From: Mytilus californianus
Taxonomy: Eukaryota
DNA length: 64,000 nucleotides
Assembly (NCBI RefSeq): GCF_021869535.1
Contig: NW_026262690.1
Span: 117,738,001-117,802,000 of the forward strand
Direction: 5' to 3'
Shown: positions 803-64,000 of the stretch, in pieces
How the letters are laid out: each line of letters begins with the position of its first letter
Numbering within the stretch: the stretch's first letter is position 1
Program-made: the position numbers and the translations under genes
The notes under the pieces: generated by a model
The model's input: the letters and a program-made list of their open reading frames with translations, nothing else
Told to the model about the DNA's origin: nothing
The model's database searches: none

Positions 803-2511
803 TATGACTAATAAGTCTAAATCATTTTTAAGATGAGTTTTCAGATGTTAATAGCAGCAACTCTTAAAAAATGTGAATAAAAGACAATGATGGGTATATG
901 TCAATGAGACAACAACCCAACAACATAAAATAACAGGAAACATTTTTAGAAGCCTACAGTATAAACTTCATCAAGAATGGACAAAGCAGAAAAGTTATCG
1001 TTTGAACTATGTATAAGTTTCAAAGTCACTATACCATAAGTGGGTCAGGCAGGGGCACAAACACTGCTAGAAACTGTGATGCACTGATGCTAATGCAAAA
1101 GCATTGCAACTGCTTATGATGTATTTGATAAAATTCAGAAAAAAGGAACTAACCAAAAAAAAAAACCCACATTTGATTGTGTAAGGAAATATTTCAAAAA
1201 GTCTCTGCAGCAAGAGTAGGACAGGAAGAGAAACGCATATCTCACTTGAAAAAATGACAAACATGTACATGTATGCTAATGCAGCAGATGCCAGAAAAAT
1301 AACAGTTATATGTCTCACTCCCTCTAATGTTAATCAACATGAAAATGAATTAACTCTTTTTCTTTGTACTTTCTCCTCATAGAAAGTTATGCAATTATAA
1401 TTATCTGAATATTCTGAATGAGAAAAGATATAAAAGATATAATTTTCAACCAGCTACCATTGACTAGCTAATATACTGATGTCATTATAAAACATTTTCA
1501 TAGTCACTGTACAAAGATGTAGTACAAATTGTATAGGCACTGAGTAATAAAAAATCTTTGTCAAGACAGTACACACAAGGTGCTTGCTCTTGCTGGAGAT
1601 TATTTACAGTGAATGTTAGTGACGAACGTGAATCACTCACATATACTTTACATAAACTGTAAACCAACTTATTTTCAAGGATACTATTTTTATTGTTTAT
1701 TAGTCCTTTCTAGCTTAATTGATACAATTTATTTCTGCAATTTTTTAAAAACTTTCTTGACATATTTAAACATGTTGAATAAGGAAATATCCAAGTTTGA
1801 CATGTTAATGATGACTATTATTTAAATTTTTTTCTAGTCGCCAAAATAAATCACTAATGAAAATAATTTGGTTTACGGTAGTTATTCAAATCGACTTTCA
1901 CCCTGTTGTACAGTGGATCTCTCTACACTATTGTAAACGTGCAAATTTTTGTACAGGGATAATTTCGATTATTGAATAACAACTTAAAATGCGCAGATAC
2001 ATAACACACACAAATAGTATACACAGATCAATAATATTGATGTGAAGGGCCCATTTATTGTTGGATGCACCAATTTTACCCAGCTCATAAATCACAAAAA
2101 AAAAACAAGAAACATCCACATTCTCATGTATCAAGAATAAATCACCTTGTGTATTTGTTATAACAGAAGCACTATGCAGTTAACTATTATGAATGTTTTG
2201 CATATTGTTTATAAATTAAATCTAAAATTGGTTGAAAAATATATTTTCTAATGCTAAACCTGCAACACCTATTCAACAACAAAAATTTGGCAGTAATAGG
2301 AAAAACATGTCTCTTGGAGACACACTCATTCATTTAATTTCTTGTAAGTATGTTCTCTTTGAGACCATACAACCATATGTTCTCTTCAAGACCATACAAC
2401 CATACCATTTGCATAGTAATTAATTAAAATAACCTATAGGTAATGTTACTAGCCACTCGGAGCAAGACAGCCTAAGCTGATTTGAAACCATTCCTTTTAA
2501 ATTTTCGCTGG

Positions 2512-5500: not shown

Positions 5501-8500
5501 TTTTGACTAGGTGTACCAAACATTGGCGGTGAATCTATCATTATTTCCCTGTTGTGTTCTGAAATAGATAGAGATGCTTGTAAAAAATGTTCTACTGTTA
5601 ATTGTATCAGCATTTCTTTGTTCGTCTGCTATTTAATTATTTCTATGGAAGTTATTCAGAACTTCAGATTTAGATAAGACACAAGTAACTTATAAATGAA
5701 GTCTGTATAGTGATATCAAGATGTATACTTTATGTAAACTTTTATTTTGTTGGTTACTCTTGATCGATTGATTGTTGGTTGCTTAATGGTTTACTCTTGA
5801 CATTTAACCTGCATCTCATTTAGTTATTTTTAATAAGTAAATAGATATATTAACATTTGGATGCTACATGTAAATGTCAAGAGAGAAAAACAAACTATTT
5901 CTAGAGGTGCATTATTCAAGTGGGACGCATAATAACAGCTTTGGATAACAATGCATGAAAACCATTTGTCAAAACAAAATGTTTCGACCACCTTTAAGAA
6001 ATTCTTTGTTTGATGTTGCCTACCCATGCCTAATAGGGTTGGGTAGGCAGGGTAGGGATTTTTTTTTTTTTTTTTTTTGCCAAGAGCATAAGTTCTATGT
6101 TTTAGACAAGAAAACAAAGTGAGAGCAGGAAAAAATCTTTAAAAATAAAAGAAGAATGTGTCGAGGACATGAATGCCCCCTCTTAAGCTTCATCAAACAT
6201 ATGAAAAAGGGACGGACGGATGGAAAGATGGAAGGAAGGAAGTTCAAGGGTAACAATTAATGCCCCCGTCGCCAAATTTGAAATGATTTGTGTCATAAAA
6301 TTTTTCAGGCAGGCTGCTTTTAAGGTGGGTAGGTAGGCAACATCAAACAATTTAAATTTTATTTTTGGTCCTATCTTTTTGGAAAAGCCAAATGTTTAGT
6401 GACAAACCGTAAGTATGGTAAAAATCAAATGGAAATACATCTATACAATATGTAGGTTCAATGTTTATTTAGAATAACCTGGACACTTTTCCTTGTTACA
6501 GACTGTATAATGACCTCTAGATTTCTATATCAGTTTTATTTATTTAGCTAGATTTTGTCACAGTATTATTTACCCTTCCTCTTCAAAACAATAATCTGCA
6601 TGTGTCATTTTCTAATTCTTAGTTGATTAAAACTTTCCAAACCATGTTGCTTTGAAAATTTCTTTAAAAAAAACATGTTCTCTTTGTCAGATGTTGTTGG
6701 GCATCTTTTTTTATGTCACCATATAAATCATAACCAGAGAACAACATAATAGTTCAGACTGTCTTGAATTCATATCGATGATAGTTGAGAATGAACAAAC
6801 CACGTTGATTTTTATCACAACAAACAAATGTTTTATACCACAAAAAAAAAACAAAACAGATATGTCAAAGTTAGCTACAAAGTGTCGAATAGTCTACCAA
6901 CTCTTTGTGCATTTCTCTACTCTTGAAAATCAAATTCCAAAAATGTATCGGTTGAGTGTGAAAAAATATTGTATCCAACTCATTGCAGTGATAGAATCTA
7001 CAGTCAATCCTGTATATAAGAAAAGGATGGCCTGGCAAGACAGACTTTTGGTTAATAAAGGTGCCCTTTAAACAAGTACCAGGTTTGACTGCATATTAAA
7101 CAATATAATTTTGATAAATTCCCAGTACCTTCATCCTCAAAGCTGATTGTCATTTTGTCACTAGCTATGCCTGAAGTTGTATTAGAACTGGCATTGCTGA
7201 CAACTGAATATCTCACATTCAGTACAGATTTAGTGCTAGGTGACAAACTCCCCCTAAATGATCCTCCATGTGCCTTTAAGTCTTTAGGGTCACTATAAAT
7301 GTACAATTCTCTGTATCTTTTCTTATCTGAAATATACATTTGTACAAATATATTAATTTATGCATTGCAATCGACGGTACAGAAAGGGTCATATTTGCCA
7401 GTCATGACCGATTCAAATAACTGAAATGAGATTCCAATTTTTGTCAAATTGAATTGGACAATTTTCAGAGATCTAAGTTTTCAGCATTATTTATGAGAAT
7501 TTCTAATATGTCTTCCATTCAAGGAAGAATAACTCAATTTTCAAACTTCTGATTTACAGAAGTTGCAGTTTATTAGAAAGGAAACAATGATGTAAAATTT
7601 CTATAGTGTCCCATGCGATGTAGCAGATGTGCCATTTCTTTTCTTTCTTCATAAGTTTTACACATACAATACCTTGGAAAAATAAGGTAACTTTTCGTAT
7701 TCAACATTTTAACAAAAACTTAAAGGTGAAATTTGAGAGAAGAGTAGAATGTCTTTCGTTGACATAATCCAGCTAAGTAGTAGTGTACATGATTGTTTAC
7801 CTTGTTCCTCCAAATGTCTTATTTCCATCAATTTAGGATGTATTGCTAACTGGAACATGTGTGTTTGTTTACATAGTTGTAACAAGTATTTTGATTTGGT
7901 ATCACAGTCTGTGTAATAAGCAAATTTCCTCCCTTCAGGTGCACCAGCTGCTCGGATCTCAAATTTCTTTTTCTGTAAATAAATAAATATAAATGGAGTA
8001 TAAGTAAAATAGGATAGAAATTCAACACATACAACTACAAGAGATTTAAATTTATTACTAATGGTATTTAAAATTCTTTGTAACAAATATCTAATGAGGA
8101 ATTTAAATTTATGTTATTTAAACCTTCATGTTCCTTTCCTAAATGTTTAACAGCACCTAAAAGTTTTGCCTTACATTTTTGCAGATTAAATGTTTAATTA
8201 CTGCACCAATAATGTTAATTTTAAATGCTTCTGGTAAAAAATTGACCACTGGTCCCTATTTGTAAATAAAAAAATCGTGATAAAATAATAATTTAGAACA
8301 AATCAATGACTGTCATATGCTGGTAGCTTAAGTTGTTGATAAATATTGTTTTATAATGATGTTCTGTTATAGTCTCAATATTGATAACATACTTCAAAGA
8401 ATAATTTTCCAATATCTGGCCACAGGAATGTTGATATCAAATTCTTCAGGCTTTCATCTACCTCCTGTTATATAAAAAATACCACATTTTTACAAATTAG

Positions 8501-11500
8501 TTGTAACTATATTATTGCATCGTAATTTTATTTTAATTTGTATGTATTAAAGCTGTAAATAATTTTGTTATCATTCTGTATATAAAAAAGTTTTCAAAAG
8601 CTGGTAAAACAGGTGTCTGACCTATTTTTAATCCAATTCTCCCGTTCATAATCTAAAGAATTATCTTGTTCACATACCAAAATGAACATAACATTATGCC
8701 AACTCTTAAATATCTATTGTTTGTAACATTGTTTGCCAATGATAACGTTTAGGTGTATGCTTTTTAAAATTTTAATGCAGAATGCATTGGGATTCTGAAA
8801 AGGTGAATTGTACATGCAATTCTTAATTTTTCTGGTCATAAGCATTCCTATGCACTTTTCATAATTTCTTGAATGGAAATAAAGTTGATATTTCAGTCTT
8901 AACCTTGGGTTGCTTTTTTAACATCAGGACCTATTATATTACCTCATATATTTCTATTCCTTTTGCACATATTCCAAGCCATGCATTCCAATTTTTATCT
9001 GTTTTTCTTTTCTTTAATCGATAAAAATGCAAGTTATATGCAGCTGGTGATATTGATGCCTCTTTGATAAATTTAAATTCTGCCTCAGACTTGCTAAGGT
9101 TGTGCAGATCTTGATGTATCAATGGAGTATTCTTACAGATATAATCTTTCCCTCTCTTGTTACAGATCTGTAATACATAGACTGTACAATAAGAATACAT
9201 TTGTTTATGATTTATCATATATTGATATGCTGTGTAAATAAAACTTGTGCTTTAGATCATAATTCTAATAAAAAATGTCTTGGAATTATCTCCCCTGATT
9301 TTCCTTATTTGATATTTCTTTTAAAAATTAATAATCAGTTCTTAATTTTGAATAATAATGTAAATATGTGAAGACATAAAACTTTATTAATCAAACATAT
9401 CGTTACAGTATTTGATTCCCAACAGAGCAGAATTTGCTAATTAAAAATGAAATGAATAATAAAGATATGAAAGGGACAAATCCAGATACACAGAATAAAA
9501 GAATTTCACAAGAAAAAAAATGAATGATACCTGTTTACAAGCATAACATATTGTCCTTTAGTAAATTGAAGTACCATATACAAACAAAATGTTTCAAATG
9601 CAACAAATTACCCAAGCAGGAAAATATTCTCTGGGATCAAAGTACTGTCCACCATGTTTAGATTTGATATAGTTTCCATTATCAGCTTGGAGGGCATAGG
9701 AGACCAGCTGGAAGCATTTCTCCTCTGTAGAAACATGACCATAACTGTGTATGTTGTCTTTCAGCTGAAGAAAGTATAGGTGGCGGGTCACCTTTTCCCT
9801 ACAAAATAAAATTCATTCTAAATGTACACAAGTTGTTTTTTTAACAAAATGAATATCAGACTTCTTCTAAACAAACTTACTCCTCTTGAGGCTAAAGGAT
9901 GATGACGGATGTTTAACATCTAGTGGCAAATTAGAACATGTTACTGTGATAGGAATATGAAGACAGTATTGTACTAAATAGACATGCCTAGCAGCATTTT
10001 TAACATGCTAGTTCACAATGTATCAGGCAGTCTGAAGACATGTCAATCTTCATAGACATATAATTCTAACTTTGAGCCTACAAGTCTTTGCTCTTCCTCT
10101 TAAATGTCAAGTACTTAGCAGTGAAGCAGCAAATACCAATGTTCATGTCTTTAATTGAACAGGCCCAGGATCAATCCTTGACCTCCCTAACTTGAGGCGA
10201 GCATGCTACCATGAGATTCTGTTAAGGCTAAAGGATAGATTTCAAGCATGCAAATAGATAACGTAATTTTAAGCGGGAGAGAACTACAGTTTAACTACAA
10301 TTATATATAATTTTCATCTTTAGAGTAAGTTACATAAGTATTACTTTAGTAGAAATTATTTGGCTTTTTATACCTTACCAATGCCATCATATTAAAAGTA
10401 AATATTCAACTTCTTTACACTAAAATTCCTGTTCATAAATGTTTTTTATTTGGAAATCTTACCTCAATAAGACAATCTGGTCAACATAAAACTGAACACG
10501 AAAGTAAAGAGAAACTAGTGGCTGGCCATCTGTATCTAAGCCCTGCAAATATATACACATGATAAGTTTTATTTTTGATATTGTTTCTTGCCATTTTTTC
10601 TAAATAACTTGTACAGACTGTATATTTGTATAAACTGTCGTGATACAATGTATATAGTCACTTTATATTTTAAGCTTTGTACGTGACATTAACAATACCT
10701 TTCTTACAATTTTATTAATGACATTTTCTTCCTTTTCTTAGACTTAATCTTTATGTTCCCATATAAATGTAGTTATTTAGTACGTATAAATTTGTATAAC
10801 CAGCATGTAATATATCAGCTAGCTAGAATATGACAGCAGTGAGAGTAACCTAATCAAATGGCTCTTTAGCAGAGCTATCATTTCACAACAGATTTTTCAT
10901 ACCGATAATATGAGACCTGTTTGCACGTTTTTTTTCTTTCAATAATTATAGCTTCCATCTAAAAAAGATATATGTATGATTGCTCTGAATACTGGAAAAA
11001 GTTGTCTCCCTTGTCTTGTTTATTTCTATATTAGGTACTAGTTAAATATATACAATGTGTACAAGAAGTTATTGGTTCCATAATGAATGATAATTGGATA
11101 TCACTTGATGTAAACTTGAGTTAAGTAATTTCAATATAATAATCCACAACTCCTTTGAGAGTTAATTATCAATACTGACAATTACAAAAGCGTAGTTCAA
11201 ACCAAGCTATATACAATTCACAACAGTTGTTAAACCTATTTCGTTTATGGGTAAAAAGTTTATTCATTTTTTCAAAGCAAAATGAATGAGTGTAAATATC
11301 ATAAAATCGCAAAATTCTTTTAAAGTTCTATAACAAAGTTACATATGTACCTCTGAGGTTCCAGATTTCCAGCTCTTTGGAGCAAACTTGTGAATTTTTT
11401 CTTCTAAAGGAAGAAAGTGATATTCTCCATCTGTAATGAATATAAAATTATTTATACTACCGGTACTACAAATTCAGAGAGGAACTGTCAAGGTGCAATC

Positions 11501-25500: not shown

Positions 25501-28500
25501 AATATTATACAGATATGACTAGTATCAAAGATTTGTTAACAAGGGGAATATTAAATATAAGGGAGCTTTGTATCAAATAGAATTTTACAGGGGGGTTCAT
25601 AAATCATTTTATTCATTTGCAGTGCATTTATCATTTAGTGATAATGTTGAAGAGGCTGTCTATAGAGATTTTTATTTTAAGTTTACAATGCCTTTTAATA
25701 TGTGATTATCTGGTTAAATCCAAAATATTTAATATTGATTACTAAGCATAGACATTGTTTGATTACTAATGTCTACCACAAGTTATATACAATTGGAATG
25801 TTATGTTTTCAAACTTAGTATGCATGTTCATTACGATGTGAACATTTGAAATTATATGCCAAAGTAAGGTTTGGACCCCAATTACATTGTTCATAGTCAA
25901 AACTTGAACAAAAACTTATTTTGTAATAGAAGATATTATGAAACCCATGAACCCCCTTTGCTAAAAGCCAAAAGTTTACATTGATTAATGAGAAGCTTGT
26001 TTAATCTTTTTTTTTTTATTTTAGGAGAGGACCTCATCATAGATGTGTTCTCTATAAACAAGAGCCAATCTGAGGAAGACATTCCCAACAAACCTACAAC
26101 TGGACATATAGGAATAATTAAAGGAATGTTATCATGTGGAAACAAAATTTTACAAAATGGAGCTTTTGTTCTAAAATGCTTTCATAAAATTATTAATTTC
26201 TGTAGAGGACCTTTATCATTTCACTACCATGCTTTCAATTCACTGGAACAGTTGCTTAGCCAGGTTTTACAGATAGTTACTGTAATAAAAGTGTTGTCTG
26301 CTGATGCAGAATTAATGTCTGCTATTCCAAAAATAGTTTCAGAAACCATAGATATCGTGTGGCTAAATTGGGATAGCCCTGTACAAGATGTACCTCAAAT
26401 AGTCATTAGAATCTTCTCTGGGATGTTACAAATATGGCAACATGGTTATAAACATTGTGGTTGTCATGACATTATACCTGATTTGTTGTCAAGGTTACGT
26501 AATATGTCTTGGTATGTCAAAAGTCAATACAGAATCATCAGTGTGCTACTGTCTTTTATGGATAGTCAGCTGGTAAGGATCGTTTTTATGTATAATATAA
26601 AAATTCTGACTTTCTTTGCCTATGCAAAAAATAAGGAGATGTGGTAGGATTGCCAATGAGACAACTTTCCTCTAAAAAAAAAATAGAGTAAAAGAATGTA
26701 AACAATTTTTACTCAAAGTATGATCTACAACAGTAAGCAAAATCCATTCTGCATAGTAATTTATAAAAGGCCTGGGGTAACATATGTGAAACAATTCAAA
26801 TGAGAAAATTATAGGCAATAATATGAAAGGAAAGCCAATAATAGCAGGTGTCAACCTACAACAACAACCATTGGACTTAAGACGTTGGACTGGCACATTA
26901 AGAATGTTGAAGTACCCTCATGTTATAGTAAATGATTGATTTTGATTGGTGTTCCCAAATACAGAACATTAGCATCATTATAACATTAAGATGAAAAATA
27001 GAATTAATACAGTAATAATGTTGATTGATATGCATACTCTATGTTACAGATTTTAGATAGTGATATTAGAAACAGACTTTTATTGTGCATGTCATCAAAT
27101 TATCTGGCTCCAAGTGGTGCTGACGTTTATAAAGCATTTCTTATAAAGATGAGGTCAGTTCTATGTTTTTCTATATGAACATACAATTTATACATTCATC
27201 AAAAGATATGTGTTAAATGTCCATTTGATTAATAACCCCCAAAAATGATATATTGATTGACATTGGCACTATTTAATTAAATGAGCAGACAATTTTAGGT
27301 AAATATTTATAAATAGAATTACATATTATTTTCACTTGACTGTAATTTTTGAATTAAGATTATCTCCCCTAGACATATTTGTATTAAATTGAATTCAAGA
27401 AATGGCAATTTTGATTGCTTTTTCAGAAAGAATTTGAAATTCTCATACATTTTATAACTTGTTGGTGTGTTCATAATCCTTTTCAGACAGGCTTTTTTCA
27501 ATTCTTTTATTAACATTGGAACCATATCCAATGTAGCAAAAAAATTGAGGTAAGGATTTGCTATTGTCATAGATGTTTTTTTATATATCAGTTTCAAAGG
27601 AATCTTCTGTGAAGAAAATTTTGTCAGGATTATAAATGCAAACATGGCTACTGACAACCTTTCTACTGCACTTATGACATTGAAGGGATTTTAAGTTACA
27701 ATGAGCTTGTGATTAGACTGTTCATTGAGATTCATCTTTTTTTTAGATCACAAGGAGAATTTGAAGAAGTTTGGACAAGTCAATGGAAGAGAACAATTAT
27801 TGAAGGATTGACTAGTGATAACAGGTATATAGAAAAAAATCAAATACATATTAGAATTTGTCTTATAAGTCTGTTAATGTTTTGGTCATGGTTCTAGAGG
27901 CTTCCTCACATTTTGTAAACAAAAGAAAATGGCGTCCATGACATGTGGTCAAACCTACACATGTTACAAAATTATATCTGACAAAATTCAGATTTCTCTT
28001 GGCAAAAGGGATTTATATGTATATTGCAATAAATTATTCAGAAGAAGGTACATTCAGTCTAAATTATATTTCTGATTCTGTGAGCACTTAGAGTTTTATC
28101 AAAATTCTCCCAACGTATTTCTCTTGTACCGTATATTTAATAAATAAATTCAAACCATTTGAATTTTAAGGGCATCTAATTCGCATTACAATGGAAGACA
28201 ATGAATAAAGACAACACTTTATTAAGAAATAGTTCCTTTTATTAATTAAAAACAAAATTTTCTTGTCTGCAAGATTTTAATTGCATAACTTCCGGGTCCA
28301 TTTCCTGTCAGAAAAACATTAAAAATATCCGATTGTGCATGGTTTTGAACAAATATATATCAGAATATTCTTATCCTATTTGCCGATATATTGTTTTATA
28401 CGATATAATTAACATTAAACGTATAGGGAAGGGTTTGGTGTTTTGAAATAATATTACAATAGCTGATATATTCATTTAGCCGATATCTGATTAGGTGGAG

Positions 28501-40500: not shown

Positions 40501-43500
40501 CAGATCAAGTTCGAATTGTGGTGGCGTCACTTTTACCATTCTAGAGTTATGCCCCTTTATAAATGGAAAAATTGCTGAATTTTTCGTTTCCGTTCTCTAA
40601 CTTTAGTTAGCCTCAACTAAATGTTATGAAACTTAAAAACAATGCTTATTACCACAAAACTCAGATCAAGTACAAATTTGGGCAGCGTCACTTTTACAGT
40701 CTTTTATAACGTTATTTGCAAGCAGGGGTATCATCTGTGTCCCATGGACACATTCCCCATTAATTTTCTTTAAAAATTGATGAAAATGTTGATTTTTCTT
40801 TAAAAATGAATGTCTACTATAAAGTGGTCCATATCATGATTTCGAGGACCAAATTAGTTTGCAAAGGGGTTATTGTGTTTTTCATGTTCCGGATTCAGTT
40901 ATTCTTTTAATATCTTATTAGGGAATTTTTTTAAGCTATTTCATCTTCATTGGAAAGTTTTGTACATCAAAGTATTTGTACACTAAAGATGTAGACCTCT
41001 TTCCGTAATCAAATAACTTTTAAAACAATTTAAGGTGTGAGATTGGTCTGTTTATGAGTATTTATACATTTATTTCTAAATTCTGTCTTGTAATGGGCGT
41101 ATGCCATTCGCACAGCTTTAATCAATTTTCAATCTTTCATTTGCGACAATTCAATAATTTCAAGATACATTTGTTCCTTTCGAACTTCAGTGCTGTGCTT
41201 TTTTCATGGCGTAAAGGGTTTTATTGTCCTTTGATATTCTAAAGGCTGTAAAGAGATTTTTATATCATTTGATATTTTATTGCTATACTTAGTTATTTTA
41301 GTGGATGTAAACAGTGCTTTTAACCTTAAAATTGACCTGTACCTGTAAAATAATTAGCGCAAAGCAAATGAAAGAAATAATCAGTGCAAATGAAAGAAAA
41401 AATTGGCGCAAGTGAAATGCAGATTGGTCGCAAATGCAAAACGCTGCTTGTAATTTCTTAATTTTAATTCTACTACTGAGAAACTTTATGGTTTCAGCTA
41501 AAAGATATGAACGTACCATATGAGGAATAGAACATTAATATGGAAAACAGCAGAATTCAGAGTTTATGTTGAAAATTTCATTTTGTTCTTGTCCTATATT
41601 CTTTACTATAAAACTACTAAACATGGATATAAAAGGTTGAGGGGTATGATTTTAATGAGACAACAACTAAACAGCACATATATCATGAAAATAATGTGAT
41701 GCAGTTAAGAGTTGTGCCCCCTGATTATGCAGAATATAGCCTTATCTTAAGTTTCCTTTCAATAATTTTAGTATGTGAGTAAAAAAATCCTCAAAATTGC
41801 AACAGAATGGGTTGGACTATTTGATAAAAATCATCTGTTTTTACCTGAGTTATGTCCCTTAGTAATTCCATATATTTTTTCTTTATTTTTTCATTTACAG
41901 TGGCTTTGTTTACTATAAAGCCCAATGATGTGTTTTACCTGTCCTAATGACACATTTTTAATCTTATGTATTTAGATAAAAAACTTCATGTACACAGCAG
42001 TTTCTACTAAATTAAAGCAGTAATGATTTAGGTTTGTTTTCTTGTAGGGAGTCACTGAAGGCTGCAGGTCATCTTTTGTACAGTTTATCGGCCATCTTTT
42101 CACATCAGACAATGCAGATATAAACTGTATACCAAGGCAGATACTAAGTCAGGTAGTAAAGAATCATTTTTATATATATATTCAGAATTTGTATTGGAGA
42201 TAAAGATTTCTTCATATTTTATTCATCTTTAAATATTTTCCTTCTCACCCTGGAGGGTATTTTTGAAAATTAAAATACCCTTGATACTAATAGTAATTAT
42301 GCTTTAATTTATACTGAAAAACTATAAATGACTCAAGTTTTGTATTGACATCAATAATTAAGACATATATTTTAGTTGAAGATAATCTTTCAATTTTAAT
42401 ATTACTTTAAACCAGGATTAAACACAGATGTATTAAATGCTTTTTATACATTTTAAAAAAATTTTGGTATGAATTTTAAGTTGGTAGAAAAATATTAAAA
42501 ATTATTTTATAAATCTGTGTTATTAAATCATTTTTAATTTTCTGAAAATGAAACAAGATATATATTTTTTTTGAAAAAAAGTGAATTTTTAGGAAATATA
42601 TTACTAGATTTATTTGTGACATGCTTACCAATGATTCAAGTATTTACTGAAGACCAAAAACAAAGATGTAAACAATCAATACCTGTACTGTATGGTAAGC
42701 TATAAAAGGCCACTGAACAACAAAAAATGATATGTTTTGAAATCAGCTACAAACAGTGTGATTTAAACCCCGAAAATCTTCAGTCCAGACTGAATTTGTA
42801 TGATCTGTAACAGCTACAGTATGTTATCATCTTGTGACAGATTTAATTGCAGAACAGTTCAGGTTGTGGTTTCACATCTGATAACAGTTAACTGAGAAAA
42901 GACAATGAATTTAGTTTTAAAGAAAAGAAGTTTTATTATCAAAATACATATGCACTGAATATTCATACATAATGATTTGCTTTTGTTTCATCATTCCCAC
43001 TGTCCAATGTATGGAATGTCTTTAGAATTAGGATATTTGGATCTAGCTAAATCCAAAACACATTTTGGCATAATTTCCCGTCTGTGATAAACTACCCATT
43101 CACTACCTCCTATATTTTTCTTTCTGTCCAAGTACTCCTTAGTATACCATACCCCTAAATTGTCCATTATCTTCCAAAACTGTTTATAAATTTCCTTTCT
43201 TATTCCTGAATTTTCTGGTGAAGGTAACTGTCTATGTCCAATCCAAGGTGCAGAGCTATTCGATATAATTACACATGGACCCACCAAACAAAAGGGATAC
43301 TTTCCCTGGTTTCCGACAGTTCCTTGGGGTTCATTTACTCCTCCACCTAATGCTGATGTTTCTTGTTGCATTTCACCTTCAATTGTGGTACTAACACAAA
43401 ATTGATTACAAATCAACATGATCAATTGAAATGAAGTTATATGTAAAGATATGGAAACATTAAAAATTGTAAACACACTTTATAATTTGACCTTCATTAT

Positions 43501-52649: not shown

Positions 52650-52946
52650 TCATGAAATATCCAGAAGTAATTCTTTTTCAAGTATAGATCTCTTGCCAGA
52701 TTCATAATTAATCAGGTCACCTAATAGAATTTCAAGCCCATCATTGACTTCATCATAATCACTGGATACTGGGAGACTGATGTCCATTATTTCATCCTCG
52801 GCACTTCCCAAACTGCTTTCATTTTTTGAGAGTTCAGATGTACTTTTATGTTGAAAAGATATGTCATCAATACAAGATTCTAAAAGTAAGTCTAATTGAT
52901 GGTCTGATACTGCTTCTTCTCTTGTTTTTTTCTGAACACAATCATC
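52650..52946 (-). CDS. Probable terminal exon (98 aa, acidic) of the minus-strand 2A/NRF1-like gene
   Basis: Strong acceptor ttttcttttcag|GAT at 52946, phase 0, matching the phase-0 donor at 60634. It encodes DDCVQKK...EDEIMDISLPVSSDYDEVNDGLEILLGDLINYESGKRSILEKELLLDIS*. Confidence 0.6.
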   Translation of the reverse strand, partial: DDCVQKKTREEAVSDHQLDLLLESCIDDISFQHKSTSELSKNESSLGSAEDEIMDISLPVSSDYDEVNDGLEILLGDLINYESGKRSILEKELLLDIS

Positions 52947-56581: not shown

Positions 56582-58625
56582 CACGGCCACCAATCCAACT
56601 AAGTCATACACAAATAATATGAAAACAAGTGCGTTAATCCGACTTCCGAGTATGCAGTAGAAGTAATAAACAATCAAGAATTGCTTTACATTCACAAGGT
56701 AAGTCACCTATTTATGTCATAAGCTTTATATTTTAAAAAAAACCGAGAAAGTCATTCGACCCTTTATTTTGTTTTCCTTCATGTGTTATCACAACTTTGT
56801 TGTACATTGAGTAGTATTTTTACTACAGCTTTTCTCCCGGTGAATAACGATACAATCTGCATGAAATTCTTACCGACATCTTATGTTATTTGTTAATAAG
56901 ACACGTTATGCATGAGTACTGGTACATTTATTGATCGGTGTGATATATAAATTAATTCTAGAAAGCAAAATACTTTATAATTGTACTTATTATCAAATTA
57001 TTGCAAGAAAATTAAGAATGTATGGTTAAGAAGGACCATATATGACTTAAAAGTAACGAGTATGATTAAGTGAGAGATATTTTAGTAACCAACATGATGA
57101 TGTTCTTTTACACAATGTCAATGTTAATTATGAATAAATTCATCTTTAGGTACCGTCCTTCCTTTAGGGGATATATATGTAACAGTAATAATTAGCCAGT
57201 AAGCATGAAGGTTTAAATTCAACCCTTTTAAGGCGGATGCGCTCGACTCCTATCTTAGTTGACTGGGATTGCCAGTTTTATTAACCGAAGACCGGAGTGT
57301 CTACTGGAAGCCTTCAACAATAAAAGAAAACTAATAGTCGAAAACTGAGCTAGCAAAACAATCCATTTAATGAAACACGCAGATCAAAACTATTTGCCTG
57401 AAAATGCAAATAATTATTGTACACATCTATTTGCTATTTATTGTTATAAACAAGTTAGCAACCTGCATATCATATATAAATATTCTCGTCCTAAATTCAT
57501 TAAATGAAGTAATCTAAGTTTAACAGCTTCTTACAATCTAACAATGTTTATAAAAATAAGAATACTCGCTCGGAATAGTAAATAACCTCTCAACCAGAAC
57601 CTTATATAAAGAAATGGATGTCTTTGATGAAACGTTAACAAAATGAGACAGCAAACAAACGATAAAAATAATCAAATAACCAACATTGGAAACAAACACA
57701 CAGTTTCAGCTCTCTATAATTATGAAAGAAGGTTGAATACGAATGTATTAAAATAGAATTCTAGATTAAAACGGAATGAGGCAAAATGCAAAGCGAAAAC
57801 TAGTGACGGATCTAAAAAAAAAGGTGGGGGGAGGGGGGGCGATGATTGAAATCGCCTTTTTCTTTGACGACCAATTCATCAATATTGTATCTGTAATAGT
57901 GCGAAAAGAAAATCAATCTGTATTTTTTGCAAAAACGTCAAATTAATCCCTTTAACTTTTCCCATTTGGAACCTGCAAAGACAAGCAAATAAATTTAGAG
58001 GAGAGCTTTTTCAGCAAGCATTACACATATAAAGATGTTTTTTTTATTAGAAAGCTGGATTATTGAGATGTGTAACTACATTATACTAAGAGCAATTTTA
58101 TGATCTAAATTTTTCGTAGTGTGTTCTTACGTTACCACCAATTCATACTTGGTACGTTTTAATCATATATGATACCTTCAAACCATATCCTCCTAGGTTT
58201 AAATCGTTAAAATGATAATAAAGACATATATACACATCTCGCAATGTATAATTGATTTATATATCACACCGATCAATAAATGTACCAGTACTCATGCATA
58301 ACGTGTCTTATTAACAAATAACATAAGATGTCGGTAAGAATTTCGTGCAGATTGTATCGTTATTCACCGGTAGAAAAGCTGTAGTAAAAATACTACTCAA
58401 TGTACAACAAAGTTGTGATAACACATGAAGGAAAACAAAATAAAGGGTCGAATGACTTTCTCGGTTTGTTTAAAAATATAAAGCTTATGACATAAATAGG
58501 TGACTTACCTTGTGAATGTATAGCAATTCTTGATTGTTTATTACTTCTACTGCATACTCGGAAGTCGGATTAACGCACTTGTTTTCATATTATTTGTGTA
58601 TGACTTAGTTGGATTGGTGGCCGTG
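56582..58625. mobile_element. Non-autonomous DNA transposon with about 375-bp TIRs, CAC...GTG ends and 5-bp TSD (Transib/Chapaev/RAG-like group)
   Basis: TCATA|CACGGCCACCAATCC ... GGATTGGTGGCCGTG|TCATA. TIRs at 56582-56957 and 58250-58625 differ at only a handful of positions. No long ORF. Confidence 0.85.
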
Positions 58626-59197
58626 TCATAGGTCTGCTCCCAAGTACAAAAGTTCTGAATTTTCCTATGATAGCATTGAAATAATTTTTTCACATCATTC
58701 ATGCTATATGCTCATTTTAACATGGACAGGCATTACAGGTATATTTGTCAACAATCTACACCTTGATATGCTAGGTTAAAGATATTGAATATAACTTAGT
58801 AAAGAGATAGCCAAGCAAATAAGGACACGGAAGACTTTTTGCAAAAAGAAAAAAATCATGTAAAATTAGATATACATCATGTACAGGTATAAAAATATGT
58901 CAAATAAATTTATGTCATACTTAAAATGAATAAAGTAAAAGTTTGATACAAATTAACTAATGTGTATACCTTAATATTGCTTTCCATTAACTTTAATTTG
59001 CTCACATCATTACCATTGCTTTCATTAGAATATTTCCTTTTCTGAAAAAGAACAAGCAAAGTTGAAACAAAAGTTGAGGTTTTCAAATGATCAATAGAGT
59101 ATAGAATTTCTATTTTTCATGAAACTTTTATACAATGACATAGACTGCAAAATAGAAATGGAGTAAAATTTGATAAATGAGACATTTACTGTTATGC

Positions 59198-59322
59198 AGC
59201 CGGTTGTATGAACGTTTCATTAGTCTAATGAGTCATTAAGTCTTCATTAGCCTAATGCATCATGAAGGCTTAATGAAGACTTGATGACCCATTTGGCTAA
59301 TGCCACGTTCATACAACCAGCT
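59198..59322. repeat. Fold-back / palindromic MITE (about 55-bp arms, 14-nt loop)
   Basis: agccggttgtatgaacgt...aagtcttcattagcc / ggcttaatgaagactt...acgttcatacaaccagct. Confidence 0.75.
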
Positions 59323-59339
59323 AATGGTGTTTAAACTTG

Positions 59340-60341
59340 CTATTTCTGAAAAGGGTGACTATTGTTATGATTTTCAGATCACAAATATCATTGGGGTATC
59401 TAGTTTAAAAAATGTGTCTGATGGCCTCGCCTGCTGACCAAGATGGTTGACATGGCTAAAAATAGAACATAGGGGTAAAATGCAAGTTTTGTCTAAATAA
59501 TTTGAAAACCATCATAAATAGAGAAAATCTGACGAGGCAAAAATGTTCAGAATGTTGGTCTCTACCAACTGTCCATATAAGTCAAAACTGTCAGACGACT
59601 TCTTATAGGAAATTATTGCCCTTAAATGACAAATTTTAGCTTTTTATTTCATTTTTGCCTATTATCTTGAAAACTATAATAGATAGAGAGAAACATTAAA
59701 CTGCAAAAATGATCAGCAAGACAAGTGCTACAAATCAGTTAACATGGTCGAAATCATCAGTCGCCTCCTTATTACAGTTATTGCCCTTTGATGACGAATT
59801 TTACCAATTATTTGTGTTTTTGCCTTATATCTTAAAAATTATAATAGATAAAAAGACACTTAAATAAGCAAAAATGATCATCAAGACAAGATCTACAATT
59901 AAGACTATGGAAGAAATCGTTGACGACTCCTTATTGGAGTTATTGCTGTTTAATGACGATTTTCACCAATTTCGTTTGCATTTTGCCTTATAATTATATG
60001 ATAAAAATTATAATAGATAAATAGAAACTTTAAATCACAAAAATGATCAGCAAGTCAAGATCTACTAACAAGTCAAATTTTGCCGATATAGTTAGTAGAC
60101 TGTTACTCTTTATAGGAGTGATTGCCCTAAAATGAGGATTTTTTTTTACCCTCTTTTGTGTTTTGAGCAAAAACTAAAGAAGATAGAGAGAAACTAAACA
60201 GAATTAATGATCAGCAATACAAGATCAACAAAACAGATTTTTGTCATGAATTCTATTCTCATCTACAATGTTGGAGAATTTCTTTTGTTGAATATGCTCA
60301 TAGACCAAGGTGAGCGACACAGGCTCTTTAGAGCCTCTAGT
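59340..60341 (+). mobile_element. Non-autonomous Helitron/Helentron-type element with 4 x about 166-bp tandem array
   Basis: 3' hairpin GGCTCT-tt-AGAGCC followed by tCTAGT. Monomers marked by atgatca.caa at 59709, 59874, 60043 and 60207. Confidence 0.7.
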
Positions 60342-60633
60342 TATTAAATAGCAAGGGCCTTAACTTTAAGTGACAGAGTGAAGGAATATACCTGAAGATC
60401 ACTGTATGCTTCTAACCAATTTGGCAAATATCCTGTCACCAAAAAGGGGGCTTTGATCTGGTGGATTCAACATTTTAAAGTTATCAAACAGTCAGTTTGG
60501 AACATTGTGAACATTATTTAAATGGAGTCATTGTAAAATAAAAAATCTAATAAATTCAGTCTATTTTTGTTTTTTTTCTTATAACATCTTATTTCTATGA
60601 ATATTTTATCCTTAACAAAGTTAGTGTACTTAC

Positions 60634-63600
60634 TTGTCCTCTTGTCTGTTTTGTAGTTAATTCATATGATTTATTTGTCTCTGGAACAATGACCCTCTGA
60701 TTATTATCAGACTGACCAGTCTGATGAAGATTTATCCATGTTGTTGAAGTTGGATTATTTGACCCATTAGAATCTTTAGCTAATGTTTCCTCTCTGTTTG
60801 ATATGCTCCTTACTTTAGGGGATGTTGTATTTTCTTTGCTTTTTTTTAATTCACTGAGTGACAAAGTATTACTTTCTGCTGGCAATAGTTTATGTCTGGT
60901 AAATAAAGATTCAGTCAGTGTTGAAAAGTCAGTTTTATTGTCAATGTTTGAGGATGAATATTGTGTTGTATCTGTTCCATGATTGGAGCCACTCAATAAA
61001 ATCACTCCTGAACTTGATTTTTGTTGAATTTGTGAAGTCTTATTGACAGAGGTTCCTTGCGAGTTGTCACCATTGCGTAGTTGGTCAATATCTGAGCAAT
61101 ATGGATTGTTGGAATCAAGCATTGTAGGAAGACTGTCATCAAAAGAGATGCTATAACACACTTGTGACTTAGTTGGATAGTCCATGTTGACAGACAGTGT
61201 CATATATTTCCTTGTGACTTCTAAACTGATTTTGGGCCTCTCTTCAGAAATTCTATGCAGATTTGCAAATTTGATTTCAGTTTGGTTTTCAACATTTTGA
61301 CTTGACCACCATTGATGTAATGGGTGATAGACTTCTGTTGTGAAAAATCCTTCAGAGTGCAAGTATGTCAGAGCATAATCTAGTACTGATATGTCTGTCT
61401 GGATTGTTTTTACTCTACATAGAACTTCCTTATGTTTTTTGGATTCCTTTTTGTCAGTTGCATTGACAACATTTTCATAAGTTTCCACTAAAGATTTATA
61501 TTTTGGAGGAATAACTGCTTTTGGATGTTGCAACAAAGTTGAAACAAGTAAACGGTCGGAACAGGTATGTTTGCACTTTCCCCTGTTGAACGGACTGAAA
61601 AAAGGAACATTTGGGGGCCATTGTTTTGGGGGAGTCTTCCAAATTCCATCACATTTTGATTCTGGATCTTTTCCCTGTATAATTTTGCACACAACTGCAG
61701 CAAGGTAGCGTGTTATATCTGCAAATATTTCAGTTTGATTTTTTAACCTTTTACATGGAACATTTCTTATGTTGATTTCTTCAACTTTAAGGCTAAGCTT
61801 TACATGTATATTGTCCAGAGCTTGGTGTAGTTCATCAGTATCTCTGTAAATGATGAAATTCTGTAGAATCGTTTTTATTTTTTCAGTTTCAGTACGGAAT
61901 GTATGCAGCTTATGGAGCAATTGAATTTTATTTTCTGTCCAAGCAGCGATTTCTTTTTTATACATGTTGTGGATATGCACATTTCTATGGTCACAGCATT
62001 GTATCAGGCATTTTAAAAGATCAATATCTGAAATGAAACACCCATATTCATCATGTGGATGATTTTTAGTGTCATAGAATGGTTTATTTGATGGCCAATG
62101 CTCTGGTTTTTCTCTCCACAAGTTTTTTGGTTTGGAATGTGGTGGTTCTCCTTTATACAGTTTAAGAAGAATTGATGACATATCCTGGGTCCAAGCTCTT
62201 TCCCTCTGAGAATCATGTAGCAACTGACTCTTCTTCAATGGGGGTCCTGGATTGATATGTATGTCACCTGAACACCACAATTTATATAGTATAGCTTCTT
62301 TGTACTCGTACTTCTGTGATAGATACTTCTTCAGTTTAGCAGATTTGTGGTGTCTTGTTGATGCAATTAATATAAGAAGCATGATTATCAACATAATTTC
62401 TGTATCTGATTTCTTTCCGACCTGGTCTTCATTTTCTAAAGATTGTTCATCAAAATTAAAGGCATTTAAATAATTTGAAATGTCGACATCACTTAGCTGT
62501 CCTGTTTTCTTAGCATGTCTCAAAATACAAAGGCAGCGATACAAAATTGTTTTTCTCTCTCTCACACTTTCGTCATTAGTGTTGTCTGTTTGGTAGGCAG
62601 GGAAGTTTGAAACAGCAAAAATTTGCTGTAGTTTAGTTCTCATAGTGTTCTTATGAGTTTTAATATTATTTAGCTGTTTCTTTCCTTCTCTGATTTTTAA
62701 CAGATTCCATAGTGTGTGTGTTATTTTAATTAAGAGGTCCCCATTTGCTTGAGTCAAGTTTATGTCAAGAATAATTTTTGCAAGATCACTTCTTTGCTTG
62801 TGATATCTAATAGAGGCAATGTCACGGATAGCCTTTAAGATAATTTCTTCATTTTCCCAAGTCATTTCTTCCACATCACTGAATTCTTTGATTATGTTTA
62901 CAATTCCTTTATCTGCACTGTAGTCTACAAATGTATCAATGTAAATAGAAAGGATTGTTTCTTTTTCTTCATCTAGATGAACAATGAGATCTTCTTCTGC
63001 TAATGATAATTCATATTCTCTTTCTTCATCTATCTCTAGATCTACTTCTGTTAATATGTAGCTTAATATTTTTATCAGACTTCTATACATGCATTTATTT
63101 TCCTCAAATATTGTATCAACTTGAATGGTAGTATAAAGGGTTTCTCCAATTAATTTAAGATGTTGCAGAAATTCAATGACAAAGCCACAGACTGATCTTA
63201 GTAAATCTTCTTTTTGTGGTATAGAACATAACCACATTTCCTGTTTTTGTTGTTTGGTTCGTAGAGAACACCTGTCTCTTAACATATATTTTATGAAAAT
63301 TGTATAGCAATCAACAACAACAAAATTTCTGATGATCTTTTGCAATACTTCTAAAGTTAGTTTAATATTTGTAGTATCTTTTTTAACAATAAATTTATCT
63401 AGAATATGTATTAAAGAATTAAATATGTTCTGTTTTGTTTCAAATTGATCTTCCCTACTTTGAGTCACTTCATCAAAAGTTGATATGAAATACTTAAGAT
63501 TTTCTTCTGTTGATTGGTCAATCGCATTGCTGTGAGTTTTACAAATCATTCTTTTACTGTAACATAATTTAAGTTGATGTTCAAATTGTGAATCAGATAT

Positions 63601-64000
63601 GCCAGTTTGTAAGTCTTCAAAAGTGAACAAAGGATTTTTTAAAAGTTGTATGTCTAAGTAACGTTTAATATTAATGTGTAACATTTCTTTAGACTGAAAC
63701 TTGAGTACATCTTCCGCTAAACTGCAAAGAAACCTAAAATGGTTGTCTCTATCTTGTTTTAAAAAGATACGACTGATACAAAGAAGATGAAGAAGTCTGT
63801 CTAAACCATGATGCATACGAATATTAACAACTTCTTTCAAGAATGGACGCATATATTTATCAAAACAAGCTTGTAAATGTTCAATTTTAATGTTGAGAAA
63901 CTCCTGTGCATTGATTTCAAATTCTTCCTTTACTGTGGCATATCTATAACATTGCAATAATTTATTTATAGCAACTTCATGATGGTACAGAATGGATTTT
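60634..64000 (-). CDS. Large exon (>1120 aa, open beyond the window edge) of an uncharacterized protein: helical region, 2A-like motif, tandem NRF1/Ewg-like domains, Ser/Thr-rich tail
   Basis: Uninterrupted frame from the window end to a perfect donor CAA|GTAAGT at 60634/60633 (phase 0). It contains LWCSGDIHINPGP (motif at 62265-62242) and two KPxxWPxxxPF-type repeats. Confidence 0.85.

Follow-up and report, generated by a model that had tools for sequence, protein, structure and literature searches.

A likely cellular StopGo (2A) element in the interior of a spliced bivalve host-gene family

We identified, in the middle of a protein encoded by a spliced gene of the mussel Mytilus californianus, a 2A/StopGo-like peptide. 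It is likely to be a true cellular StopGo element that selection has preserved in a family of bivalve host genes. The gene lies on the minus strand of the stretch of DNA that we analysed (the window; 64,000 nucleotides of contig NW_026262690.1, positions 117,738,001 to 117,802,000). Its sequence, transcript and splicing are shown here, as are its conservation and the selection on its protein; ribosome skipping itself is inferred. StopGo is seen as a device of viruses and retrotransposons, employed by cellular genes "never or only rarely" (PMC12846837), and the known cellular 2As, comprising those of sea-urchin NLRs (PMC4981915) and most eukaryotic predictions, are N-terminal. We found no description of this bivalve family in the full-text literature searched; members may figure in the supplementary tables of Rao et al. 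2025.

Gene structure and transcript

The annotated product, P0001, is 1368 aa long, is encoded by three exons on the minus strand and is transcribed (Table 1). Its start ATG lies 371 nt past the end of the window (L003:4371, which would be window coordinate 64371). The open reading frame used in the initial annotation was truncated by the window edge, and the codons 565–572 given there for the motif follow the numbering of that truncated frame. The joint across intron 1 skips 1592 nt with ends CT..AC on the plus strand and is present in four of four transcriptome runs, and the length of exon 2 agrees with the 72–73 nt side of the transcriptome joint.

The reading frame is continuous across the 2A site. 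Transcriptome contigs of 4.5–4.7 kb span the site unbroken and include the downstream splice; compared with the genome, they show three differences within the 2A stretch, all of which are synonymous third-position changes. We considered and rejected the possibility that the motif reflects an exon boundary or an artefact of annotation. Neither P0001 nor the other long ORFs of the window contain a reverse transcriptase (RT) or endonuclease domain.

Table 1. Features of the gene in window coordinates, in the order of translation where applicable
Feature	Position	Strand	Basis
Predicted upstream product, CDS, aa 1–709	62245..64000, on to the ATG 371 nt past the window end	-	Full ORF read from L003
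Hydrophobic transmembrane-like stretch T657–T672, TEIMLIIMLLILIAST	62356..62403	-	Top Kyte–Doolittle 19-aa window (1.55); ends 37 aa before the Gly
Basic conserved linker R673–Y690, RHHKSAKLKKYLSQKYEY, from hydrophobic stretch to 2A core region	62302..62355	-	Near-identical in Mytilus paralogues
2A/StopGo-like peptide, aa 681–710 of P0001, KKYLSQKYEYKEAILYKLWCSGDIHINPG/P	62242..62331	-	Translation and family conservation peak
Core octapeptide D703 I704 H705 I706 N707 P708 G709 / P710	62242..62265	-	Codons; published activity of the H-p14 variant; same core in M. edulis orthologue P0002
Predicted downstream product, exon-1 portion, aa 710–1246, up to the splice donor	60634..62244	-	Joint 60634 to 59041, four transcriptome runs
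NRF1/YDR124W-like repeat 1, aa 720–812, motif KPKNLWREKPEHWPSNKPFYD	61936..62214	-	hhalign, sub-threshold PF11001, NRF1 DBD fold match
Repeat 2, aa 879–969, motif KCDGIWKTPPKQWPPNVPFFSPFNRGK, bears the family's invariant residues	61465..61737	-	Alignment A2: invariant R, K, W, P, N
Intron 1, GT..AG on the minus strand, contains highly repeated sequence	59042..60633	-	Transcript joint
Exon 2, aa 1247–1270, begins KRKYSNE, basic cluster	58970..59041	-	Exact P0001-to-window mapping
Exon 3, aa 1271–1368 and stop, C-terminal tail acidic and hydrophobic	52650..52946	-	Exact P0001 mapping

The 2A-like peptide of the window gene

Translated on the minus strand, positions 62242–62331 read KKYLSQKYEYKEAILYKLWCSGDIHINPGP. 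The core is encoded by GGT GAC ATA CAT ATC AAT CCA GGA CCC, and the bond predicted to be skipped lies between the Gly (62245–62247) and the Pro (62242–62244). The window copy, DIHINPGP, misses the strict D(V/I)ExNPGP motif at p14, which is H. In the surrounding context G11 and L7 are present, p8 is W, an unusual residue, and p6 is K, compared with L, I or V in 50 of 52 family sites.

Published work bears on these positions. H at p14 is a rare natural variant whose tested example reached a StopGo activity of approximately 90% or more in reticulocyte lysate (Li et al. 2026, PMC12846837); both H at p14 and H at p16 are over-represented among RNA viruses as rare variants, and the tested examples are approximately 90% or more active (PMC12846837). 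The activity of both variants in the bivalve family is inferred by analogy with these examples. In saturation scans of P2A and F2A (Baral et al. 2026, bioRxiv 10.64898/2026.09.24.754024), E14H is the single p14 substitution tolerated in P2A (score 0.85) and is not tolerated in F2A. L6 and L7 are substitution-intolerant in both scans, L7K is nearly inactive, bulky p8 residues abolish F2A activity, and the tolerance of a position varies with context. 2A activity also needs a suitable upstream context, and some motif-bearing cellular sequences were inactive when tested (Odon 2013, PMC3708506). With K at p6, H at p14 and I at p13, the window copy may be a weak skipper, and its K in place of the family's L, I or V could make it less efficient than its paralogues.

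Conservation of the 2A stretch

The DNA pattern GD(V/I/M)ExNPGP occurs 93 times genome-wide, compared with 0 occurrences of the reversed control. The cassette of the family is present at only nine places in the genome, in copies that are 21–29% identical overall, and four of the seven intact family copies carry the canonical GDVE(I/V/N)NPGP. At the homologous position, same-genome paralogues read LLWCSGDVEINPGP (in two copies), LLWQSGDVEVNPGP and LLWISHDVENNPGP, and two further paralogues have GDIEVHPGP. The M. edulis orthologue, P0002, is 79% identical and retains GDIHINPGP. The peptide sits at the homologous position in all 2A-bearing relatives examined, and the cassette is kept in 17 of 17 family proteins that span the site (five Mytilus species).

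A profile search over 1.84 billion representatives returned 75 matches, and 52 sites, covering five bivalve genera, were compared; the named members come from Mytilus, Mizuhopecten, Pinctada, Saccostrea and Ostrea. Across these sites L at p7, D12, P17, G18 and P19 are invariant, and G11 is found in 50. Position p13 is V or I throughout, p14 is E (49) or H (3), p16 is N (43) or H (9), and p-10 and p-9 are K-rich, while K at p6 occurs twice. W at p8 was demanded by the search pattern, and its invariance is thus by construction. The family departs from the core consensus only by H at p16 or, in the window gene and the M. edulis orthologue, by H at p14.

The 2A stretch is the conservation maximum of the family (0.82–0.87 versus a mean of 0.45). 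For the last 36 codons up to the Pro, the five main paralogues show a saturated pS of approximately 0.84 and a pN of 0.07–0.21; for the next 36 codons, the same pairs give a pN of 0.26–0.59. Different codons are used at every core position among the copies. Since the peptide is retained over saturated synonymous sites, selection has acted on the 2A stretch at the protein level; this saturation also rules out gene conversion as the source of the conservation. The conserved block reaches approximately 45 aa upstream and is longer than viral 2As (18–22 aa). The peptide marks a module boundary, with a helical half that matches no Pfam family before it and a module with a twice-repeated W-P motif and an acidic tail after it. 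The downstream module also appears to occur alone, beginning just after the 2A point.

Several claims of the initial annotation can be judged at this point. It had placed a 2A/StopGo-like motif at 62242–62331, which holds on the basis of the minus-strand translation and the family conservation, and at the boundary between a helical N-terminal half and an NRF1-like and acidic half, which also holds. The same is true of its description of a host-like spliced gene with no RT or endonuclease nearby, as far as P0001 and the other long ORFs of the window are concerned. A lack of NPGP conservation among homologues, which it had named as refuting, is not observed: the NPGP region is the conservation peak and is kept across all five genera. 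Its caveat that the change from E to H may reduce skipping is eased by the activity of the natural H-p14 variant (PMC12846837) and the tolerance of E14H in P2A, which does not extend to F2A.

The upstream half and a possible Bcl-2 link

No Pfam family was found in the whole of P0001, in its upstream half or in nine further upstream halves. An Atlas feature search with the N-terminal half produced only alpha-solenoid-type leads, at 0.90 or less, and we do not rely on them. The hydrophobic stretch is the top Kyte–Doolittle window in 15 of 17 family members (1.5–2.3), and its end always lies 31–40 aa before the Gly. With approximately 16 uncharged residues, it is short and borderline in the window copy (KD19 1.55). 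The upstream product may be tail-anchor-like, in that the position of the hydrophobic segment fits such a role if skipping occurs; membrane insertion is inferred.

In P0063, a Pinctada protein, a Bcl-2 family domain that passes the PF00452 cut-off with 41 bits makes up the upstream part. After it come the hydrophobic stretch, the basic flank and then the 2A, joined by an intron with canonical splice signals. As in tail-anchored Bcl-2 proteins, the hydrophobic stretch and basic flank are found at the usual place of the tail anchor, and the intron lies just past the BH2-like motif. Unlike in those proteins, the frame of P0063 runs on through the 2A into another protein, and the N-terminal parts of the Mytilus members are helical and unrelated. 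The Bcl-2/2A fusion is a single annotated gene model without an RNA check.

The downstream module

The two repeats of the downstream module share the same layout of a helix, a long loop and helices in a structural model (pLDDT 84.5 for aa 710–1075). When a 49-sequence profile (A4) was aligned by hhalign with the mussel's own NRF1 exon, a probability of 86% was obtained (P 4.8e-6, 41 columns), compared with only 6.8% for a Mytilus-only profile. PF11001 gives sub-threshold matches in 11 of 49 members and PF10491 matches one of 49 (E 0.043). The window protein has no match to NRF1 (PF10491) at the Pfam cut-off, and a genome-wide PF10491 scan recovered the true NRF1 loci and not the 2A family.

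Structural support is weak. VIA-align scored the NRF1 DBD (8k4l_B, 8k3d_A) at Z 3.7–4.2, with ranks 4 to 23 and not above unrelated rows; the sequence identity of the NRF1 rows (15–19%) is among the highest of the rows listed. Foldseek searches of the PDB with the 366-aa and 113-aa models returned nothing at E ≤ 0.001, TM values in the ESM Atlas fold search were 0.28 or less, and a PDB sequence-profile search with the downstream module returned only noise. The module has the R-x-(F/W)...KP..W...P-x-W-W-P-x-x-x-P-(F/W) core of the NRF1/EWG DBD (PF10491; PDB 8K3D, 8K4L) and of the YDR124W-like domain (PF11001). It differs from the NRF1/EWG DBD in falling below every curated threshold and in consisting of two tandem repeats instead of one domain. 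We use "NRF1-like" for a remote similarity below Pfam thresholds that has profile support; a DNA-binding function is inferred.

Comparison with known 2A elements

The bivalve family shares with viral class A 2As (FMDV F2A, porcine teschovirus P2A and Thosea asigna T2A) the G-D-(V/I)-E-x-N-P-G/P core, leucines at p6 and p7 (except at p6 of the window copy) and an in-frame location between two protein modules, and its p14-H and p16-H variants are known in viruses. The ...TCGDVExNPGP of the oyster members resembles T2A, LLTCGDVEENPGP. In contrast to the viral elements, the bivalve 2A resides in a spliced host gene with no viral genes and has an extra conserved upstream block of approximately 30 aa, composed of the basic linker and the hydrophobic stretch.

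The 2A-like signals of sea-urchin NLRs (Roulston et al. 2016, PMC4981915) also belong to a cellular, non-transposon family of a marine invertebrate, and they too couple a hydrophobic element to a 2A, with skipping setting membrane versus cytosolic fate. Their 2A, however, lies at the very N-terminus, and their hydrophobic part is the signal peptide itself, whereas the bivalve 2A is found mid-protein after 180 to 1400 residues. The bivalve hydrophobic stretch lies approximately 35 aa upstream and would become the C-terminus of the first product, and the downstream partner is NRF1-like, not an NLR.

The repeated non-LTR retrotransposons of the mussel genome contain many 2A-coding sites, each with a hydrophobic leader and located ahead of APE endonuclease domains (Exo_endo_phos downstream). 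Such APE-type 2As (Odon et al. 2013, PMC3708506) occur in molluscs, including the M. californianus genome, and resemble the bivalve cassette in having a hydrophobic leader followed by GD(V/I)ExNPGP. They differ from it in that they are multi-copy and N-terminal in ORF2, before the endonuclease, whereas the bivalve family lacks RT and endonuclease and is low-copy and old. In addition, their hydrophobic run directly abuts GD(V/I)E, without a W-x-[SC]-G signature. Retrotransposon 2As may have been the evolutionary source of the bivalve cassette.

Alternative explanations

The alternative closest to our reading is that the family element works and that the window copy is weakened or dead, K at p6 and H at p14 leading mostly to read-through. 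The gene would then yield mainly one membrane-tethered factor of 1368 aa with an internal hydrophobic segment, and another release step would be needed. The rarity of K at p6 (2 of 52 sites), the intolerance of the p6 and p7 leucines in both saturation scans, the near-inactivity of L7K and the tolerance of E14H in P2A only all speak for this view. We nevertheless consider it unlikely: the cassette is otherwise intact in the window gene and in the M. edulis orthologue at 79% overall identity, the natural differences within it are synonymous, and a natural H-p14 sequence is approximately 90% active, tolerance being context-dependent. It is less likely still that the peptide has another role, as a juxtamembrane or targeting helix, protease site or binding motif, and resembles a 2A by convergence, with no skipping in any member. 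Direct evidence of skipping is absent, the conserved block extends approximately 45 aa upstream and thus beyond the 18–22 aa of viral elements, and some motif-bearing cellular sequences proved inactive in earlier work (PMC3708506). On the other hand, nine defining positions agree with the StopGo consensus, and the variable positions (p13 V/I, p15 free, p14 and p16 to H) coincide with those at which active viral elements differ. Moreover, the motif is always at the junction of two separable modules, the second of which also appears to occur alone.

We give even less weight to the idea that the ORF is a transposable-element or virus-derived protein with its own 2A and not a host gene. The genome is rich in 2A-coding non-LTR retrotransposons, which are a plausible source of the cassette; however, the cassette is found at only nine places with 21–29% overall identity between copies, the three spliced exons encode no RT, endonuclease, integrase or capsid domain, an orthologue exists in M. 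edulis with relatives in four other bivalve genera, and the retrotransposon 2As differ in their abutting hydrophobic run and missing W-x-[SC]-G. A chance NPGP-type string in a long ORF is all but excluded. Nothing favours it except the single-residue departure from the canonical motif, and against it stand the reversed-pattern control (0 versus 93 genome-wide) and conservation of the homologous position in more than 50 proteins.

Proposed mechanism and significance

In the StopGo reading that we prefer, a ribosome translating the single ORF would fail to join Gly709 to Pro710. The upstream chain (aa 1–709) would be released, and translation would resume to give a second protein (aa 710–1368) with Pro as its first residue. 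The upstream product is predicted to be helical, its final 53 residues consisting of the uncharged hydrophobic stretch of approximately 16 residues, the basic flank and the 2A remnant. The 31–40 residues between the end of the hydrophobic stretch and the break correspond to roughly the length of the exit tunnel, so that the stretch would leave the ribosome only once the chain is released, as happens with tail-anchored membrane proteins. The downstream product, with its two NRF1/YDR124W-like repeats, basic NLS-like clusters and acidic tail, would have the layout of a transcription activator, and chains that escape skipping would be membrane-tethered fusions. The separation into two proteins, membrane insertion, a nuclear or DNA-binding function and the efficiency of the window copy are all inferred, and the two products rest on no experiment or proteomic datum.

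ATF6, SREBP and NFE2L1 are membrane-tethered transcription factors that are freed by proteolysis. They offer a comparison of working principle, in that a module resembling a transcription factor is produced along with a membrane anchor, from which it has to be freed. In the bivalve family, by contrast, release would be co-translational and protease-free, at a ratio set by the peptide sequence and not by signalling, and there is no sequence relationship. The proposal in the initial annotation of an anchor and a freed DNA-binding effector gains support from the hydrophobic stretch, which it had not mentioned, and from the NRF1 profile similarity, although separation is not shown. Its tandem NRF1-like half holds in part, as there are two repeats with remote similarity below Pfam thresholds. 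It had offered a domesticated retroelement-derived junction as an alternative; retrotransposon 2As are a plausible source of the cassette, whereas the ORF as a transposable element is rejected.

A bolder reading, which we are slightly inclined to doubt, is that an ancient cellular StopGo across the pteriomorph bivalves co-translationally produces a tail-anchored membrane protein (a Bcl-2 family member in the pearl oyster, large helical proteins in mussels) and, at a fixed ratio, a free NRF1-like transcription factor. Natural variants of the core (H at p14 or p16, K at p6), perhaps with translational stress, would tune this ratio, and the family would hold the first conserved internal 2A in host genes to have a defined cell-biological logic.

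The family provides an internal 2A in host genes that purifying selection has kept in mussels, oysters, pearl oysters and scallops. If the StopGo reading is correct, animals have taken up ribosome skipping as a means of obtaining, from a single message, two proteins with different fates in the cell; the family would also suggest a new route to tail-anchored proteins. The family further offers a natural series of core variants (E/H at p14, N/H at p16 and L/I/V/K at p6) in a non-viral context and, in the Pinctada gene model, brings a Bcl-2-type protein and an NRF1-like factor together within one lineage.

The motif and its gene

Translation confirms the mid-protein 2A-like motif reported in the initial annotation. 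The open reading frame assigned to it there was truncated by the window end; the full first exon begins outside the window and, with the flanking sequence included, is a 1258-codon ORF. The annotated product, P0001 (1368 aa), maps exactly onto three exons and places the 2A core at D703-I-H-I-N-P-G709, followed by P710. Skipping of the Gly709-Pro710 bond would yield two predicted products, aa 1-709 (upstream) and aa 710-1368 (downstream).

Features of the gene, its relatives and other elements (window positions unless a contig or fetched stretch, L, is named; G000, M. californianus genome)
Feature	Location	Strand	Remarks
Window	G000:C110:117738001-117802000		
2A-like motif	62242-62331	minus	translates as KKYLSQKYEYKEAILYKLWCSGDIHINPGP
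Exon 1	ATG (371 nt beyond window end) down to 60634	minus	exact P0001 mapping
Exon 2	59041-58970	minus	exact P0001 mapping
Exon 3	52946-52653 + stop codon	minus	exact P0001 mapping
Other long ORFs	3817-5181, 2512-3078, 42991-43476	minus	
Other long ORF	25988-26647	plus	
Broken family copy	G000:C99:77615822-77616539		in-frame stops
Broken family copy	G000:C132:119215505-119215822		in-frame stops; GDVEFNPGP still encoded
Module-only paralogues	L005:1423-2868, L007:1450-2856	plus	both on C143, ~20 kb apart
Module-only paralogue	L008:1450-2394	plus	
Module-only paralogue	L013:1099-2178	minus	
P0063 gene model (Pinctada imbricata)	L073:6001-7924	plus	Bcl-2 exon joined to cassette exon
Non-LTR retrotransposons, N-terminal 2A	L060:3-1727, L071:3-1847	minus	examples
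Non-LTR retrotransposon, N-terminal 2A	L069:1231-2367	plus	example
Full NRF1 (PF10491)	G000:C1:23476141-23484937		
Full NRF1 (PF10491)	G000:C1:97225361-97233491		
Single-exon NRF1-like match	C121:26283579-26283752		reads ...GWGKSNCIPVWWPLD
Single-exon NRF1-like match	C87:12284603-12284725		

Assembled transcriptome contigs from four public runs, two of them on record as RNA-Seq, were checked over window positions 58001-64000. In all four runs 60634 is joined to 59041, leaving out 1592 nt that have GT..AG ends on the minus strand, and contigs of 4501 and 4738 nt continue from 60634 to the window end. Since these contigs are unbroken across the motif and the joint is spliced, the motif lies inside one spliced mRNA and does not coincide with the boundary of an exon or gene. 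Expression level cannot be inferred, because the contigs are assembled. Transcriptome and genome differ at three positions within the 30-codon stretch (62263, 62308 and 62320), all of them synonymous third codon positions (D703, Y688 and L684); the closest amino acid change, L712M, falls after the break.

Within intron 1 (59200-60400), summed contig depth reaches 1,000-11,000 and irregular joints and loose ends are numerous, probably reflecting repeated or mobile sequence that is expressed from many loci and is not part of this mRNA. The window's other long ORFs match no Pfam family at E <= 0.001.

Conservation of the 2A cassette

A six-frame genome search with the protein identified 13 places besides the window's gene. 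Seven genomic copies are intact and carry the cassette (hydrophobic stretch, basic flank and 2A core); two more copies are broken. The homologous position reads LLWCSGDVEINPGP in two paralogues, LLWCSGDIEVHPGP in two others, and LLWQSGDVEVNPGP and LLWISHDVENNPGP in one each. From 5.8 billion proteins, a word-indexed search returned 18, exclusively from Mytilus; besides the window's own product, these come from M. edulis, coruscus, trossulus, galloprovincialis and californianus. The cassette is present in each of the 17 Mytilus proteins that span the site, and the M. edulis orthologue (79% identity across the region) shares GDIHINPGP with the window's gene. Conservation in the alignment peaks at aa 678-707, with a majority fraction of 0.82-0.87 versus a mean of 0.45.

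Over the 36 codons ending at the proline, synonymous difference among the seven copies is saturated (~0.84), and non-synonymous difference among the five main copies is 0.07-0.21; the same pairs give 0.26-0.59 over the next 36 codons. At every core residue, codon choice varies from copy to copy. Saturated synonymous difference, low non-synonymous difference and varied codons show that the 2A stretch is under purifying selection at the protein level. The interpretation in the initial annotation, that the motif frees a transcription-factor module, would have been refuted by a lack of NPGP conservation among homologues, and it passes this test.

Four paralogues, whose upstream exons are undetermined, have the downstream module only and begin a few residues past the site of the 2A; no cassette was detected near them. 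In the M. edulis protein P0005 (768 aa, annotated MTHFD2), the downstream module occurs alongside THF dehydrogenase/cyclohydrolase domains and without a 2A; this protein is likely a merged gene model.

In a wider search, a HMMER profile (A3) extending from the hydrophobic stretch through the end of the downstream module found 75 proteins (E <= 0.001) among 1.84 billion representatives. Members with a species name belong to Mizuhopecten yessoensis, Pinctada imbricata, Saccostrea cucullata and Ostrea edulis, all pteriomorph bivalves. When the M. californianus genome was searched in reverse, the Pinctada member and one further member matched back to the family, the former also to the window's gene (E 1.8e-7). 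Four proteins from short contigs (P0067, P0075, P0081 and P0087), with two to four tandem LLLSGD(I/V)ExNPGP motifs ~45 aa apart, match the profile via the 2A region only.

Core variants and activity

We gathered 52 sites with a pattern demanding W at p8, counting the final proline as p19. Leu at p7, Asp at p12 and P17-G18-P19 are invariant, and p11 is Gly in 50 sites. Position p13 is Val (30) or Ile (22), p14 Glu (49) or His (3) and p16 Asn (43) or His (9); p15 is free, and p6 is Leu (26), Ile (16), Val (8) or Lys (2). The sites further share lysines at p-10 and p-9 and, at ~p-28 to p-20, a hydrophobic run.

Few core variants are over-represented in the proteomes of RNA viruses, but His at p14 and His at p16 both are; in reticulocyte lysate, natural sequences with either variant show StopGo at ~90% or above (Li et al. 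2026, PMC12846837). In saturation mutagenesis of P2A and F2A (Baral et al. 2026, bioRxiv 10.64898/2026.09.24.754024), substitutions at L6 and L7 were not tolerated, V13I had scores of 0.82 (P2A) and 0.62 (F2A), and E14H in P2A (0.85) was the only change at D12, E14 or N16 to reach a score of 0.6. By this literature comparison, the family departs from the canonical core only in ways known to be compatible with activity, as selection for skipping would predict. Skipping itself is inferred; the family's element is likely a working StopGo, and the explanation as a whole is, with slightly less confidence, also likely to be correct. For the window's copy we lean only slightly towards a useful degree of skipping. 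It has Lys at p6, where the M. edulis orthologue has Ile, and given the published intolerance of L6 this may limit its activity.

Origin of the cassette

The conservation might be ascribed to recent gene conversion or to an element acting at the nucleotide level; both are ruled out by the codon differences and the synonymous saturation. That the gene family is itself a transposon was also considered and rejected. The DNA pattern for GD(V/I/M)ExNPGP has 93 exact sites in the whole genome versus none in a reversed control. Most belong to repeated families in which a hydrophobic leader adjoins the motif near the ORF start, and only four belong to the gene family. Three of four retroelement-type ORFs tested run on into an APE endonuclease, a leader-2A-APE arrangement already described, and active, for mollusc elements (Odon et al. 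2013). Selection on a host protein remains our reading of the conservation; a retroelement source of the cassette is plausible, as a hypothesis.

The upstream half

No Pfam family was found in the upstream half. In this half lies TEIMLIIMLLILIAST, which has the highest hydrophobicity of any 19-residue window in the whole protein; in 15 of 17 family members the equivalent stretch ranks first as well (Kyte-Doolittle 1.5-2.3). The stretch invariably stops 31-40 residues ahead of the glycine, and the basic flank comes next; this spacing is close to that of one ribosomal exit tunnel. In tail-anchored proteins, a segment so spaced would be exposed only after release, and from this we infer that the stretch may behave in a tail-anchor-like manner.

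The Pinctada relative P0063 has a Bcl-2 family domain at residues 50-138 (PF00452, E 2.9e-10, above cut-off). Its chain continues ...KGKWIK / QAMLLLLSMLLSVSFGG RTRLKH ... LILWVCGDVELNPGP, where the slash marks an in-phase intron with canonical donor and acceptor, and the exon after it codes for the hydrophobic stretch, basic flank, 2A (GDVELNPGP) and NRF1-like module. Bcl-2 proteins are classic tail-anchored proteins. P0063 thus offers independent support for the tail-anchor reading, resting on an annotation model without an RNA check.

The downstream module

Structure prediction for aa 710-1075 gave a model of good confidence (pLDDT 84.5, pTM 0.83) with two similar units, each with a helix, a long ordered loop containing the W-P motif, and more helices. 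The "NRF1-like" label of the initial annotation held in part: profile alignment favours it, but the family lies beyond the range of the Pfam NRF1 model. A profile of repeat 1 (49 sequences) aligns with the mussel's own NRF1 exon (86% probability, P 4.8e-6). PF11001 (YDR124W-like) has a sub-threshold match in 11 of the 49 members and a weak contact at the same motif of the true NRF1 exon. Comparison with NRF1 DNA-binding domain structures gave Z 3.7-4.2 at 15-19% identity, not above unrelated rows.

Past the repeats the sequence is rich in Ser/Thr and carries basic clusters, and the C-terminal tail is acidic and hydrophobic. The window's protein and the oyster, scallop and pearl-oyster members have this layout in common; we infer that it may be that of a transcription activator. 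Ribosome skipping by 2A peptides is already known, as are N-terminal 2As in cellular proteins. An internal, anciently conserved 2A lying between a tail-anchor-like segment and an NRF1-like module in host genes was not met in the literature searched, whose coverage is incomplete (the tables of Rao et al. lie outside it). Two full NRF1 loci, both on contig C1, and two single-exon NRF1-like matches were also located in the M. californianus genome.
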